Positions 4,550 to 8,241 of a DNA stretch of 64,000 nucleotides are shown here, piece after piece. The translations under genes and the position numbers were made by a program. The notes below the pieces were generated by a model. The model saw only the letters and a program-made list of their open reading frames with translations, did not search any database and was not told the DNA's origin. The stretch is from Bigelowiella natans CCMP2755 (lineage: Eukaryota; Protista; Cercozoa), in NCBI GenBank assembly GCA_000320545.1, contig ADNK01000140.1:1-64000 (forward strand). The letters run 5' to 3'. Position 1 is the stretch's first letter, and each line of letters opens with the position of its first letter.

Positions 4550-5240
4550 CGTATCAAGCATATAGTGCATGGTATGAATTTTAATCCTTGAATCAATGAT
4601 AGAGCTATGCATGCATGCCTACATTAATTAAATAATATATTAGTAGATGATTGACCGAAAGTTTTTACTAGGCTATCTTCTGATAAAGCATCAACATGGA
4701 GCACTAGAGCACCGCCATGAAGCATAAGCAATTATGTAATAGCGCATCTACAATGCTCATGCTGTCTACATGGCTTATGTTGAAACATTTTACATTGTTT
4801 CCAAGAAACTGCTAAGCGACAAACAGCAAAAGGTTACTCTTGTTTCGGCTGAAGAGCAAAAATTACTAGTCGGTATCAACCGGTAGCTAAATCGTCGTAC
4901 ATGCGCCACATCACGTTGCGCATCGCATGGTAGTATTCTAAAGGTATTGAACAAAGACATGTCACAGCCATGCTACCACGCATGCAACTACACATCAGCT
5001 ACATTTCATCGCGTTTGTTTATTTTGTCTACATTGCTGAAGCGGTGCAGGCATGAATGTCTATTTGCTTACGAGCGTGCGTGAGGTAAGAAAGTTTCACA
5101 GGTGCGCATTTTTTATCATTCTCATCATGTCCACATCGGATCGATTCATTTCCGTGTTTGACCATGAACGTCGGCAATGTAACGTGAAAAATACAACCAG
5201 CTAGCTAGTCATATAATACCACATGCAGTATGACTTGATT
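4550..5240. other. Palindrome-rich intergenic spacer A between convergent 3' ends
   Basis: No long ORF or microsatellite. Many CATG/TGCA/CTAG words, e.g. ATGCATGCAT at ~4608 and AGCTAGCTAG at ~5200. Confidence 0.6.
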
Positions 5241-5304
5241 TTAACAAAATGGAAACATCCTTTACACAATCCGTTCTTGATGTTGTTCGTAGCCTCCATT
5301 GTCA

Positions 5305-6831
5305 TTACAACTTTGAGCGAACGACATTTCTAGGAGGAAATGGACCTTGACTCAGATTATGCGTCAACCCTTTCTCCACTTTCTTAGCCAATGACTTGTC
5401 ACCCTTTAACTCATCATACCACTTTTGAGTTCCTTTCCAATCTTCTTCATTTCGTGGATATATTTGTTTGACCCTTTTGCGTCCTTTAAGAACGATATTG
5501 TGGACACGGTCTTTTCGGTGTTCCACGTATCTCTTCAGAGCATCCAGGACAGACACGTTCGACGTTTGTAGCATGTACGACAAAACCTGCGAGTCTTCTA
5601 GAGCTAAAGCCCCTCCCTGTCCCATGACAGGCAAAGTTGGGTGTGCTGAATCACCCAATAGCACAACTCTACCGCGGTTGAATGTTGGTAGGGCGTCTAT
5701 ATCACAGATAGGAATTCGGTTGCAAGACCGCTTTACATCGATCGAGTTTATTAAATTTTGCACCCTTTTAGGGAAATTTTTAAATAAAGTCTTGAGTTCA
5801 TCTCTCATAGCCTCGCTGGCTCTCGGAGGTGGGGTGTTGTTTTCAGGTAAAGGAGCACCCATGAAAAAGTAGAATCGGTCTTTTCCAACAGGCATCAGGG
5901 AGGCACGTTTTCCTTCGCCCACCCACATTATCCATTCATTAAACTTTCCGAGATTAGGAGACATCTTCACCAAGCCATTCCAGTTTGTATAGCGGTAGAA
6001 AATGGGAAGTTTCTTTCCAATGACATATTCGCGTACCATAGAACGAATGCCATCGGCTCCAATCAGGATATCTGCTACAGCGGAACGGCTTCCATCATCG
6101 AACACTGCATACACCTTGCTGTTTTCATCATTCGGATTTACTCTTTCAATTTTCTTGCATGTCTTTCCCAAAGAAAGTTGCCCCCCCGTGGATTTGTACG
6201 TGTCCATGAGAAGCTGTTGAAGGTATCCCCTTGCGATAGGGTACCCACGCTCTCCTAGTTTTTGGAACATCGGGTTCAGGTCAAGATTCACCAAGGGTTC
6301 ATCCATTTTGCTGTGATATATCATCTTATCCATCTGGCCTCCGTGCTCTTGCATTTCCTTGCCAAGACCCAGACTGTTCATAACTTTAACTCCGTTAGTC
6401 CATAGGGAGATAGCGGCACCGATGGGCAGGATCTCCTCCGCCCGTTCATACACATGCACCTTATACCCAATACGTCTGAGAAACACTCCGCAAGAGAGTC
6501 CTCCAATGCCGCCACCAATTATCACCACGCTCAGATCGAACATCGCCAAAGCAGTCTTAGGGGGTGGGTTTGATTGTGTGGCACGTGTCCACGTTGAGAC
6601 CTTGTTTTTCCAACCGGATTTCCGAAAAAAAGAGAAAAAAGAAGAGCGTTTTTCCCTGTCAAGCTTTTCTGGAGGGATTTCCTGATTTCGCCGAATTCCG
6701 TTCGGACGAAGTCCATTGAAGAAGATATCGAAATAGCCTTTGTCGTATTCTAGAAACCGTCTATATTTGGTGTCCAGAAGAGATGTTGTCGTAGGTAAAG
6801 TATGGACTGCATTTTTGTTGTTCGTAAGCAT
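5305..6831 (-). CDS. hpxO: HpxO-type FAD-dependent urate hydroxylase (flavin monooxygenase), intronless, C-terminal PTS1 (SKL)
   Basis: 508-aa ORF with GGGIGG FAD motif, PIGAAISLWTNGVK, GADG, YTNWNGLV, WVGEGKRASLMPVGKDRFYFF, GDSAHPTLPVMGQGG and WYDELK. These follow the bacterial HpxO motif series as recalled. It ends RSKL-stop. Confidence 0.85.
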   Translation of the reverse strand: MLTNNKNAVHTLPTTTSLLDTKYRRFLEYDKGYFDIFFNGLRPNGIRRNQEIPPEKLDREKRSSFFSFFRKSGWKNKVSTWTRATQSNPPPKTALAMFDLSVVIIGGGIGGLSCGVFLRRIGYKVHVYERAEEILPIGAAISLWTNGVKVMNSLGLGKEMQEHGGQMDKMIYHSKMDEPLVNLDLNPMFQKLGERGYPIARGYLQQLLMDTYKSTGGQLSLGKTCKKIERVNPNDENSKVYAVFDDGSRSAVADILIGADGIRSMVREYVIGKKLPIFYRYTNWNGLVKMSPNLGKFNEWIMWVGEGKRASLMPVGKDRFYFFMGAPLPENNTPPPRASEAMRDELKTLFKNFPKRVQNLINSIDVKRSCNRIPICDIDALPTFNRGRVVLLGDSAHPTLPVMGQGGALALEDSQVLSYMLQTSNVSVLDALKRYVEHRKDRVHNIVLKGRKRVKQIYPRNEEDWKGTQKWYDELKGDKSLAKKVEKGLTHNLSQGPFPPRNVVRSKL

Positions 6832-7049
6832 GGTTTGTCTCCCAACAAGCTGGCAACAACATGTGCAGTAAAGGAAGAAGAATAACGAGGCATGGGTGAT
6901 GATGATGATGGGTTTGGGTTATTTAGGGTTAGCTCTAGGGGGGTGCTATGCCACGACACTTTGTGCACTACTAATACTACTACTACTAACACTACTAGAA
7001 TATCTGCTGCTTCTGATGACGACACTCTGCTTGCTGCACACTAGCATGA

Positions 7050-8241
7050 GAGAGGAACTCTACTTCAAACAGATTCGTGTGTTTTTTGAACACACCTTCC
7101 CTGCCTTGACGCCCGACCCAGGAAGAACTCAAACGCCAGGGTCCTTTCTCTCTCTTGTGGCAACATATTAAAAGTATAAAGAAGGCACAGTATGGCCAGT
7201 GCACATACAGCAGCGGCAGTAGTTGCTGGAAAATATGAAGTGCGTTTATACGGAATAGAAGTTCAAGACCTGCAGTCGATTGGAGTTCACGGAAAAAGGA
7301 AGACTAAGAAGATATTTGCGGTCATCAATTTCGACCAATTTCGTGGAGCAACGACATCGGTACTACACTATAAATTGAAATTATCCTAAACGTATGACAT
7401 GAATATGTTGTTTAGAGCGTAAGATACTTCGGGCGTGCAGTGAAGGTTCCATTGGATTTGCGATTCAACTATTCTACTCAGTTCGCGCATAGACTGCGGT
7501 CAAAGTTTTGCAGTATACAAATCAAATCAAAAGGTCAATCTCTACAGCACTACATCACTTGCTGTTTCTGCTTTCGTATTCTCTAGTCGTTGTCCCTCAA
7601 ATCAATTCGAACAATAACGACGCTATCGTATCGTGAACCAGGTCTGTTCTCGTCGGAAAGCATTGGCTTTGTCCGTGTTGACCTCCACACCTTACTAACA
7701 GGGCCTATAAACCATAAATTGACCATTTGGAGTCGAAATGCACCCGTTGGTATTGTTAGCTTCAAATTGGAAATGAAAGAAATCGTCAACCTCTGGGTGC
7801 TGCAAAACAACATCATTCTCGACTACTTAAGTACATCCATAATGAAGTCTGAATATGGATATGTTGTCTCTGTTACCAGGTAATCTTGAAGAACGTATCA
7901 GTATCTAATATTCCCAAATTGAAGAATGGGAGGGACGCATCCGTATTTCTTCGGGCATCGATACCAGGCTTCAAAGGTGTAACCACCAAGGTACTGGTGG
8001 TAGTAGTAGGATACTAGGGGTGGTAGGAGTAGTAGTAGTAGTGACAGTTGGAAAGTGGTAGTAGTAGTAGTAGTAGCTAAAATGCAATAAATAAAAAAGA
8101 ATTCTGACAAGCTTTTCTACTTACTTGCTACCATTGTTTTCTTCAGGTAGAAACACCACTCGCAACAGAAACCAGAAATGCAGGTAGTAGTCGCACACAT
8201 AATACGTTCTTCACTATGAATTTTATCGTCAAGACTCTTAA

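Follow-up and report, generated by a model that had tools for sequence, protein, structure and literature searches.

A putative peroxisomal HpxO-type urate hydroxylase in the chlorarachniophyte Bigelowiella natans

The window analysed here is a 64,000-nucleotide stretch of the genome of the chlorarachniophyte Bigelowiella natans CCMP2755 (assembly GCA_000320545.1, contig ADNK01000140.1, positions 1 to 64,000), and positions 5305-6543 on its minus strand are an expressed, intronless nuclear gene with a polyadenylated mRNA. The product, a 412-residue homologue of the bacterial flavin adenine dinucleotide (FAD)-dependent urate hydroxylase HpxO, probably stands in for uricase after import into peroxisomes by way of its C-terminal Ser-Lys-Leu (SKL), as judged from its sequence and that of its partners. 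In the mechanism we propose, FAD would be reduced by NAD(P)H and combine with O2 into a flavin hydroperoxide, which would hydroxylate urate at C5 to 5-hydroxyisourate (HIU) with the release of water and not of H2O2. The receptor for the type 1 peroxisomal targeting signal (PTS1) would read the disordered tail, ...RNVVRSKL, and the folded enzyme would be imported. Within the peroxisome, an HIU hydrolase (HIUase) bearing a type 2 signal (PTS2) and an OHCU (2-oxo-4-hydroxy-4-carboxy-5-ureidoimidazoline) decarboxylase ending in SRL would finish the conversion to allantoin, and allantoicase would process this product further. The HpxO-type enzyme would replace the cofactor-free uricase, which the genome apparently does not encode.

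Family assignment, motifs and fold

Searches against protein family models placed the product among the class-A flavin monooxygenases and nearest to HpxO. Pfam FAD_binding_3 matched at 7e-27 over model positions 2-346 of 349, and the top NCBIfam model was the HpxO equivalog NF033623 (438.5 bits over positions 2-381 of the model's 381), ahead of a second-best score of 203.5. On the same model, the other members of the eukaryotic clade described below score 444-476, the cyanobacterial proteins 597-634, and P0125, the proxy by which Klebsiella HpxO is represented in our tree (401 bits to the crystal structure 3rp6), 584. The series of HpxO motifs announced in the earlier note was located (GGGIGG, ADG, VGEGKRASLMPV and LLGDSAHP; Table 1), and the GxGxxG, DG and GD FAD motifs that mark a class-A flavin monooxygenase are all present together with Arg213. 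This residue aligns with Arg204 of the Klebsiella enzyme, the R of VGEGKR, which is replaced by Q in 3rp8, the crystal variant R204Q; the position of the change was taken from comparing the PDB sequences of 3rp6 and 3rp8, whose alignments differ at R/Q alone. Arg213 is invariant in all HpxO rows, 18 of them eukaryotic and 27 bacterial, and is common in the outgroup too. A further 20 alignment positions are common to at least 94% of the eukaryotic and at least 90% of the bona fide HpxO rows and are rare in the outgroup.

In a PDB search the best solved relative was HpxO from Klebsiella pneumoniae, 3rp6 (E 4e-75, 37% identity, 256 bits). An AlphaFold model calculated from alignment A1 (predicted local distance difference test, pLDDT, 87.5; predicted template-modelling score, pTM, 0.87) superimposed on 3rp8, 3rp7 and 3rp6 with template-modelling (TM) scores of 0.86/0.90-0.93 and a root-mean-square deviation of 2.2 Å (3rp7, 0.86/0.91). 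The next fold after HpxO was that of NicC, with TM scores of 0.74-0.81 and 135 bits in the PDB search.

Purine-catabolism genes in the B. natans genome

The 91.4-Mb draft assembly (one assembly of 3736 contigs, of which the window is C3597) was scanned exon by exon with profile hidden Markov models (HMMs). No candidate for uricase (PF01014) or for PuuD (PF06181) was found in the 3736 contigs, and HpyO was not searched for. Other genes were recovered from single exons of 24-44 residues, indicating that the sensitivity of the scan was reasonable. HIUase is encoded on C565 (36644-36958, minus strand; 71.6 bits) and ends ...GYTTYRGS, while the OHCU decarboxylase exons, split by introns and carrying the HPRIG and FGFKF motifs, lie on C999 (L005:1055-1129, 1504-1572 and 1678-1776); both proteins were read exon by exon, without a joined spliced sequence. 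Allantoicase was found on C990, and the same genome has two genes for molybdenum enzymes of the xanthine dehydrogenase (XDH) type.

The genes of HIUase and OHCU decarboxylase, urah and urad, have been argued to make sense only alongside some urate oxidase (Doniselli et al., PMC4562309). Since both are present, a urate oxidase is expected and the HpxO homologue is the sole candidate found. An association with urah and urad is seen in the gene content of the B. natans genome, where no Uox or PuuD candidate was found, and in the gene adjacency of its relatives. The earlier note had suggested that the enzyme may replace or supplement uricase; because the enzymes that consume the product are present and neither uricase nor PuuD was found, replacement is the better of the two readings.

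Gene neighbourhoods of relatives

The eukaryotic HpxO clade is found in purine-breakdown gene clusters of labyrinthulomycetes. In contig L097 the order is a leftward fusion gene for malate synthase, OHCU decarboxylase, a beta-lactamase fold and allantoicase, then HpxO (rightward), HIUase (leftward), a TauD/XanA-like dioxygenase (leftward) and a double deaminase (rightward). The HpxO homologue is divergently paired with the same fusion gene in L091 and in L099 (Hondaea fermentalgiana BEYU01000048.1), and in L091 a deaminase and a TauD/XanA-like gene are additionally found nearby. In L092 and L093, the HIUase gene directly adjoins the HpxO homologue. Genes for a cyclin, a CRAL-TRIO protein, a protein kinase and a reverse transcriptase on the contigs that carry these homologues indicate that the contigs are eukaryotic. 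With these linkages at hand, and with the genome content given above, we infer that urate is the substrate of the eukaryotic HpxO clade.

The same linkage is seen in bacteria. Of 80 cyanobacterial loci, 54 carry HIUase or OHCU decarboxylase in the flanking DNA retrieved, mostly directly downstream of HpxO. The operon of L021 has the gene order amidohydrolase, porin, xanthine/uracil permease, HpxO, HIUase, OHCU decarboxylase and a second amidohydrolase.

The labyrinthulomycete-type clusters extend over L097:3636-12202 (JGI 3300007522 Ga0105053_10006604), L091:4990-13999 and L099:3819-11218, and point to a compact gene cluster for purine catabolism in eukaryotes. Their fusion gene is a single open-reading frame of 1416-1591 residues, in which malate synthase and OHCU decarboxylase are joined to a beta-lactamase-fold domain and a pair of allantoicase repeats, and their deaminase has a double cytidine-deaminase fold and is guanine-deaminase-like. 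A link between ureide breakdown and malate synthase has been proposed (PMC10120013), and the fusion lends independent support to it. The tail-to-tail arrangement of HpxO and HIUase genes was seen at L092:10001-11720 (ENA ERZ26167977, a 752-kb contig) and in L093.

Predicted peroxisomal targeting signals

The C-terminal extension described in the earlier note is real but short, as 11 residues follow the conserved GP in the algal protein against 2 in bacterial HpxO. Tails within the eukaryotic clade read GPFPPRNVVRSKL in B. natans, ...PLRSKL in Chlorarachnion, ...PPRAKL in one member and ...GPWPPRL in nine. PTS1-like ends are present in 12 of the 18 eukaryotic members (SKL twice, AKL once, PRL nine times) and in none of 101 full-length cyanobacterial proteins. 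PRL is a recognised plant PTS1. A PTS1 was defined as a [SA][KR][LM]-type tripeptide that forms the very end of the mature protein and is accessible there, as in ...VRSKL. Residues 405-412 have a pLDDT below 50 in the AlphaFold model, which predicts a flexible, exposed tail.

Signals were also seen in the partner enzymes. The HIUase of B. natans has a PTS2-like RVSILSCHA 11 residues before its catalytic domain (L004 ~2024-2050), the exon with the start codon not having been located. This nonapeptide fits the PTS2 consensus, with an estimated chance expectation of ~0.01 over the ~1300 residues scanned, and it lines up with the N-terminal RLSKLSCQM of the labyrinthulomycete-type HIUase of L097. 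The last exon of the B. natans OHCU decarboxylase reads ...AEKAKKTSRL-stop, and the protein appears to end in SRL, a canonical PTS1, by way of an inferred in-frame join across a GC-AG intron of ~84 nt, a join that is supported by alignment with the OHCU decarboxylase domain of L097. The XanA-like proteins encoded near HpxO in L091 and L097 terminate in SKL and SRL. Exons of the Pex2/10/12 family (61 bits) and of Pex14 (40 bits) were found in the B. natans genome. Peroxisomal import of the HpxO homologue is predicted from its C-terminus together with these partner signals.

The L092 HpxO homologue terminates in ...PWQSVE, with no PTS1, and the HIUase encoded beside it lacks an N-terminal extension. 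This suggests that the L092/L093 lineage may run a cytosolic version of the same pathway, and the co-variation of the HpxO and HIUase signals suggests that the signals are used where they occur.

Phylogeny and origin

A maximum-likelihood tree (LG+C20) was calculated from 70 rows, drawn from an exhaustive search of 1.84 billion representatives and from a nearest-homologue search. All 18 eukaryotic sequences, from chlorarachniophytes and labyrinthulomycetes, form a single clade (99/99). Together with an unnamed metagenomic protein, P0122, whose 6-kb contig has no informative neighbours, this clade is sister (94/86) to one comprising cyanobacterial HpxO, P0123, P0125 (Halomonas/Klebsiella-type) and P0131, and the whole HpxO-like group is split from the other class-A monooxygenases sampled at 100/97. 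The phylogeny for which the earlier note had called places the protein in the HpxO-like group, next to the clade of the Klebsiella-type proteins and not within it; family models, PDB matches, fold and tree together speak for a member of the HpxO lineage and not for a monooxygenase of the salicylate or maleamate type. The closest proteins are those of MMETSP transcripts from Chlorarachnion reptans and Lotharella (77-78% identity), and cyanobacterial proteins are 44-50% identical. The best 80 prokaryotic loci, among 185,579 prokaryotic species genomes, are all cyanobacterial.

Cyanobacteria and other bacteria commonly have the HpxO gene, whereas its distribution among eukaryotes is patchy, and none of the eukaryotic contigs seen has an intron in it, a pattern that fits an ancient transfer from bacteria. 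An ultimately bacterial origin is plausible; the eukaryotic clade is sister to, and not nested in, the sampled bacterial clade, a placement that fixes neither donor nor direction. The horizontal acquisition suggested in the earlier note is plausible as to bacterial origin and does not stand as an event private to the B. natans genome, as the clade is shared with labyrinthulomycetes. Chlorarachniophytes branch among labyrinthulomycete-type sequences with moderate support (85/67) and are sister to P0010 at 98/84, and from this position the gene may have passed from eukaryote to eukaryote.

Somewhat more open to doubt than to belief is a wider scenario that we put forward tentatively. Here a eukaryotic HpxO lineage, mostly fitted with PTS1, would have displaced uricase in two or more distant protist groups, chlorarachniophytes (Rhizaria) and labyrinthulomycetes (Stramenopiles), and with PTS2-bearing HIUase and PTS1-bearing partners it would make up an H2O2-free, NAD(P)H-consuming peroxisomal route of urate oxidation. 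The gene would have been acquired from bacteria once, in ancient times, and would probably have moved on from eukaryote to eukaryote.

One other eukaryotic sequence was placed in the tree. P0131, from the basidiomycete Cylindrobasidium torrendii (KIY70105.1), lies inside the bacterial HpxO clade beside the Halomonas-type P0125; its annotation is that of a monooxygenase for aromatic compounds, its HpxO model score is 466 bits, and its C-terminus is not PTS1-like. It may be a second, independent eukaryotic acquisition of HpxO.

Transcripts and gene structure

The gene lies in an ATG-to-stop open-reading frame (ORF) of 508 codons (5305..6831, minus strand) that terminates ...NVVRSKL-stop. Transcript evidence consists of assembled contigs, from which exact transcript ends and the RNA strand are not definable. 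Contigs from four runs in four studies extend from 5079, 5121, 5149 and 5150 to 6471, 6562, 6572 and 6580, with no joints, mismatches or indels, and two JGI transcript assemblies (L006 and L007) span 5138-6598 and 5140-6587 and encode the identical 412-residue product. All six are colinear with the genome, and there is no intron joint within 5121-6598. This agrees with the earlier note, which had described an intronless ORF in an intron-rich genome, the surrounding DNA being intron-bearing (a 103-nt GT..AG intron in the neighbouring gene). In L006, a non-templated A7 follows ...GAATCGATCC where the genome reads GATGTGG, which places a poly(A) site at ~5138. The RSKL terminus is kept in mature polyadenylated transcripts, and none of the transcripts examined ends differently. 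Between 63 and 80% of the words sampled from 5000-7300 recur in transcripts assembled for 20 runs, which belong to six studies.

The N-terminal extension of ~97 residues claimed in the earlier note has to be given up, on the grounds of transcript coverage and of homologue start positions. Transcripts reach 6598 at most, contig depth over 6611-6792 is zero in all four runs, and the ATG of the long ORF (6829-6831) falls inside the ~270-bp gap that separates two divergent transcripts. MFDL is the N-terminus of 18 of the 18 eukaryotic homologues and matches Met97 of the long ORF, and the N-terminus of cyanobacterial HpxO (MYNLK...) falls at the same position; a comparable extension was found in no homologue examined. 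The stop-free frame upstream of Met97 runs for 125 codons (window 6599-6918, minus strand), which is uncommon and not extreme and may be due to chance, an equally long upstream open stretch being found empirically at 2.1% of random window positions.

Points against the assignment and alternative interpretations

Several observations count against a peroxisomal urate hydroxylase in place of uricase. The urate activity and the peroxisomal location of the eukaryotic clade are predictions from genes and their context, and a peroxisomal flavin hydroxylase would require NAD(P)H within the organelle. The HpxO identity given in the earlier note is favoured by the top family model and the fold, and the tree puts the protein inside the HpxO-like group, but the score of 438.5 bits lies below the NCBIfam equivalog cut-off (438 vs 500); every member of the eukaryotic clade is under this 500-bit cut-off (438-476), and the clade is placed outside that of the characterised, Klebsiella-type enzyme. 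Arg213 and Tyr225, the equivalents of Arg204 and Tyr216, were considered as a test of urate specificity and dropped, because the outgroup conserves both and they do not discriminate. Six of the 18 eukaryotic members have other ends, the Lotharella orthologues terminating in SKK or NAS, and the targeting signal is not conserved even within chlorarachniophytes. The peroxins identified exclude PEX5 and PEX7, neither of which was searched for, and the SRL end of the OHCU decarboxylase depends on the inferred GC-AG join of its exons. The evidence that uricase is lacking comes from one draft assembly, scanned exon by exon with HMMs. At the B. natans locus itself there is no purine cluster, and ten ORFs neighbouring the HpxO homologue gave no meaningful Pfam match.

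Some of these points could be read as signs of a functionally diverged clade, that is, of an HpxO-like monooxygenase whose substrate would be, for instance, a purine other than urate, a hydroxypyridine or a hydroxybenzoate. The score under the equivalog cut-off, the placement outside the clade of the characterised type, a catalytic Arg that is not specific to HpxO and a family rich in paralogues with differing substrates would all suit such an enzyme. We nevertheless regard it as quite unlikely, given the 20 HpxO signature positions held in common, the four eukaryotic contigs that link the homologue to HIUase or OHCU decarboxylase, enzymes acting on the unstable product of urate oxidation, and the fact that urah and urad occur in a genome where no other known urate oxidase was found, a pattern that requires some urate oxidase (PMC4562309). 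A urate hydroxylase that works in the cytosol, its SKL being fortuitous, masked or unused, is likewise unlikely. HpxO makes no H2O2, which voids the usual rationale for a peroxisomal location (PMC4562309), the enzyme needs NAD(P)H, six of the 18 eukaryotic members, Lotharella included, are without a PTS1, and a PTS1 receptor was not identified (no specific PEX5 search was made). Against this, SKL, AKL and PRL extensions are confined to the eukaryotic clade (12/18 vs 0/101 cyanobacterial), the tail is predicted to be disordered, peroxins are present, the partners bear a PTS2-like motif and SRL in B. natans and the XanA-like neighbours of relatives SKL or SRL, and the HpxO and HIUase signals are lost together in L092.

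Two further readings concern the gene itself. Translation of the full 508-codon ORF, with the 96-residue N-terminal part serving as a second (mitochondrial or other) targeting region or as a regulatory region, is highly improbable: the 125-codon open frame is uncommon (2.1%) and the final ~25 residues of the extension have a basic character and many hydroxylated side chains, but none of the six assemblies has a contig beyond 6598, depth is zero over 6611-6792, and homologues lack the extension, with the transcript-derived proteins of Chlorarachnion and Lotharella beginning at MFDL. Bacterial contamination or an assembly artefact, as might be read from an intronless gene whose best non-eukaryotic relatives are all cyanobacterial, is effectively refuted, since the gene is embedded in a contig no shorter than 64 kb beside a spliced gene, is represented by polyadenylated mRNA and by transcripts in 20 runs from six studies, and has its nearest relatives (77-78%) in two other chlorarachniophyte genera, identity to cyanobacterial proteins being just 44-50%.

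Comparison with known systems

The protein shares with Klebsiella pneumoniae HpxO (3rp6/3rp7/3rp8; NF033623) the full-length fold, the FAD motifs, the Arg204 position and presumably the chemistry, and differs in being nuclear-encoded with a polyadenylated mRNA, in having a C-terminus nine residues longer with SKL, and in belonging to a separate sister clade. Its closest prokaryotic relatives, the cyanobacterial HpxO proteins named as such by NCBI (Nodosilinea, Spirulina, Phormidium), start at the same position and share the linkage to HIUase and OHCU decarboxylase, but they are ~387 residues long, end two residues past GP, have no PTS1-like end and are borne in operons. The eukaryotic cofactor-free Uox (PF01014) catalyses the same step, urate to 5-hydroxyisourate, in the same proposed compartment and with a C-terminal PTS1 signal; it is unrelated in sequence and fold, needs no cofactor and produces H2O2. 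NicC, 3-hydroxybenzoate 6-hydroxylase and salicylate hydroxylase belong to the same class-A superfamily with the same overall fold and are more distant (at most 135 vs 256 bits, 21-28% identity, TM 0.71-0.81). The tree excludes further, unnamed class-A monooxygenase representatives from the HpxO group.

In the published view Uox is the urate oxidase of eukaryotes, HpxO and HpyO are restricted to bacteria and to a limited number of these, and the pathway is peroxisomal on account of the H2O2 that Uox generates (PMC4562309). A 2026 review names hpxO for Klebsiella alone (PMC13751858). Neither a protist HpxO nor one that bears a PTS1 turned up in our literature search, and plant 'FAD-dependent urate hydroxylase' labels in transcriptome papers look, by the titles of those papers, like automatic annotations. 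The family is known; what is new is the eukaryotic clade, its peroxisomal signals and hosts in which uricase was not detected. If our interpretation is true, the first step of uricolysis has undergone non-orthologous replacement in eukaryotes too, the peroxisomal compartment has been retained although its peroxide rationale is gone, and the peroxisomes of such protists must supply reduced pyridine nucleotide. It would also fill a pathway hole in a marine alga that has urah and urad and no known urate oxidase, and in which the recycling of purine nitrogen matters.

Feature coordinates and the divergent neighbour

Positions of the features in the window are collected in Table 1.

Table 1 Features of the HpxO homologue and its surroundings in the window
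Feature	Position	Strand	Remarks
Coding sequence with stop codon, 412-residue HpxO-type FAD-dependent monooxygenase (MFDL...RSKL)	5305..6543	-	Intronless; transcripts, homologue starts
5′ untranslated region	6544..6598	-	~20-55 nt; transcript assembly ends
3′ untranslated region	5138..5304	-	~167 nt; poly(A) site near 5138-5140
Codons of the SKL tripeptide, Arg at -4	5308..5316	-	Same letters in every transcript contig
GGGIGG dinucleotide-binding (FAD) motif, residues 10-15	6499..6516	-	Rossmann-fold Pfam families match there
ADG motif	6049-6057	-	Class-A flavin monooxygenase/HpxO series
VGEGKRASLMPV motif containing Arg213	5887..5922	-	Alignment to 3rp6/3rp8
LLGDSAHP motif	5638-5661	-	Class-A flavin monooxygenase/HpxO series
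In-frame open stretch, untranscribed promoter/intergenic DNA between divergent genes	6599..6831	-	Zero transcript depth
Divergent neighbour gene, first exons	6872..7359	+	Contig pieces 6872-6894, 6998-7359 and onward; no Pfam match

The divergent neighbour gene is transcribed in four of the four runs examined, with a transcript start near 6872; its strand was deduced solely from the GT..AG reading. Its intron occupies 6895-6997 (joint 6894>6998), which marks the window as intron-bearing nuclear DNA, and a further splice donor lies at 7359.

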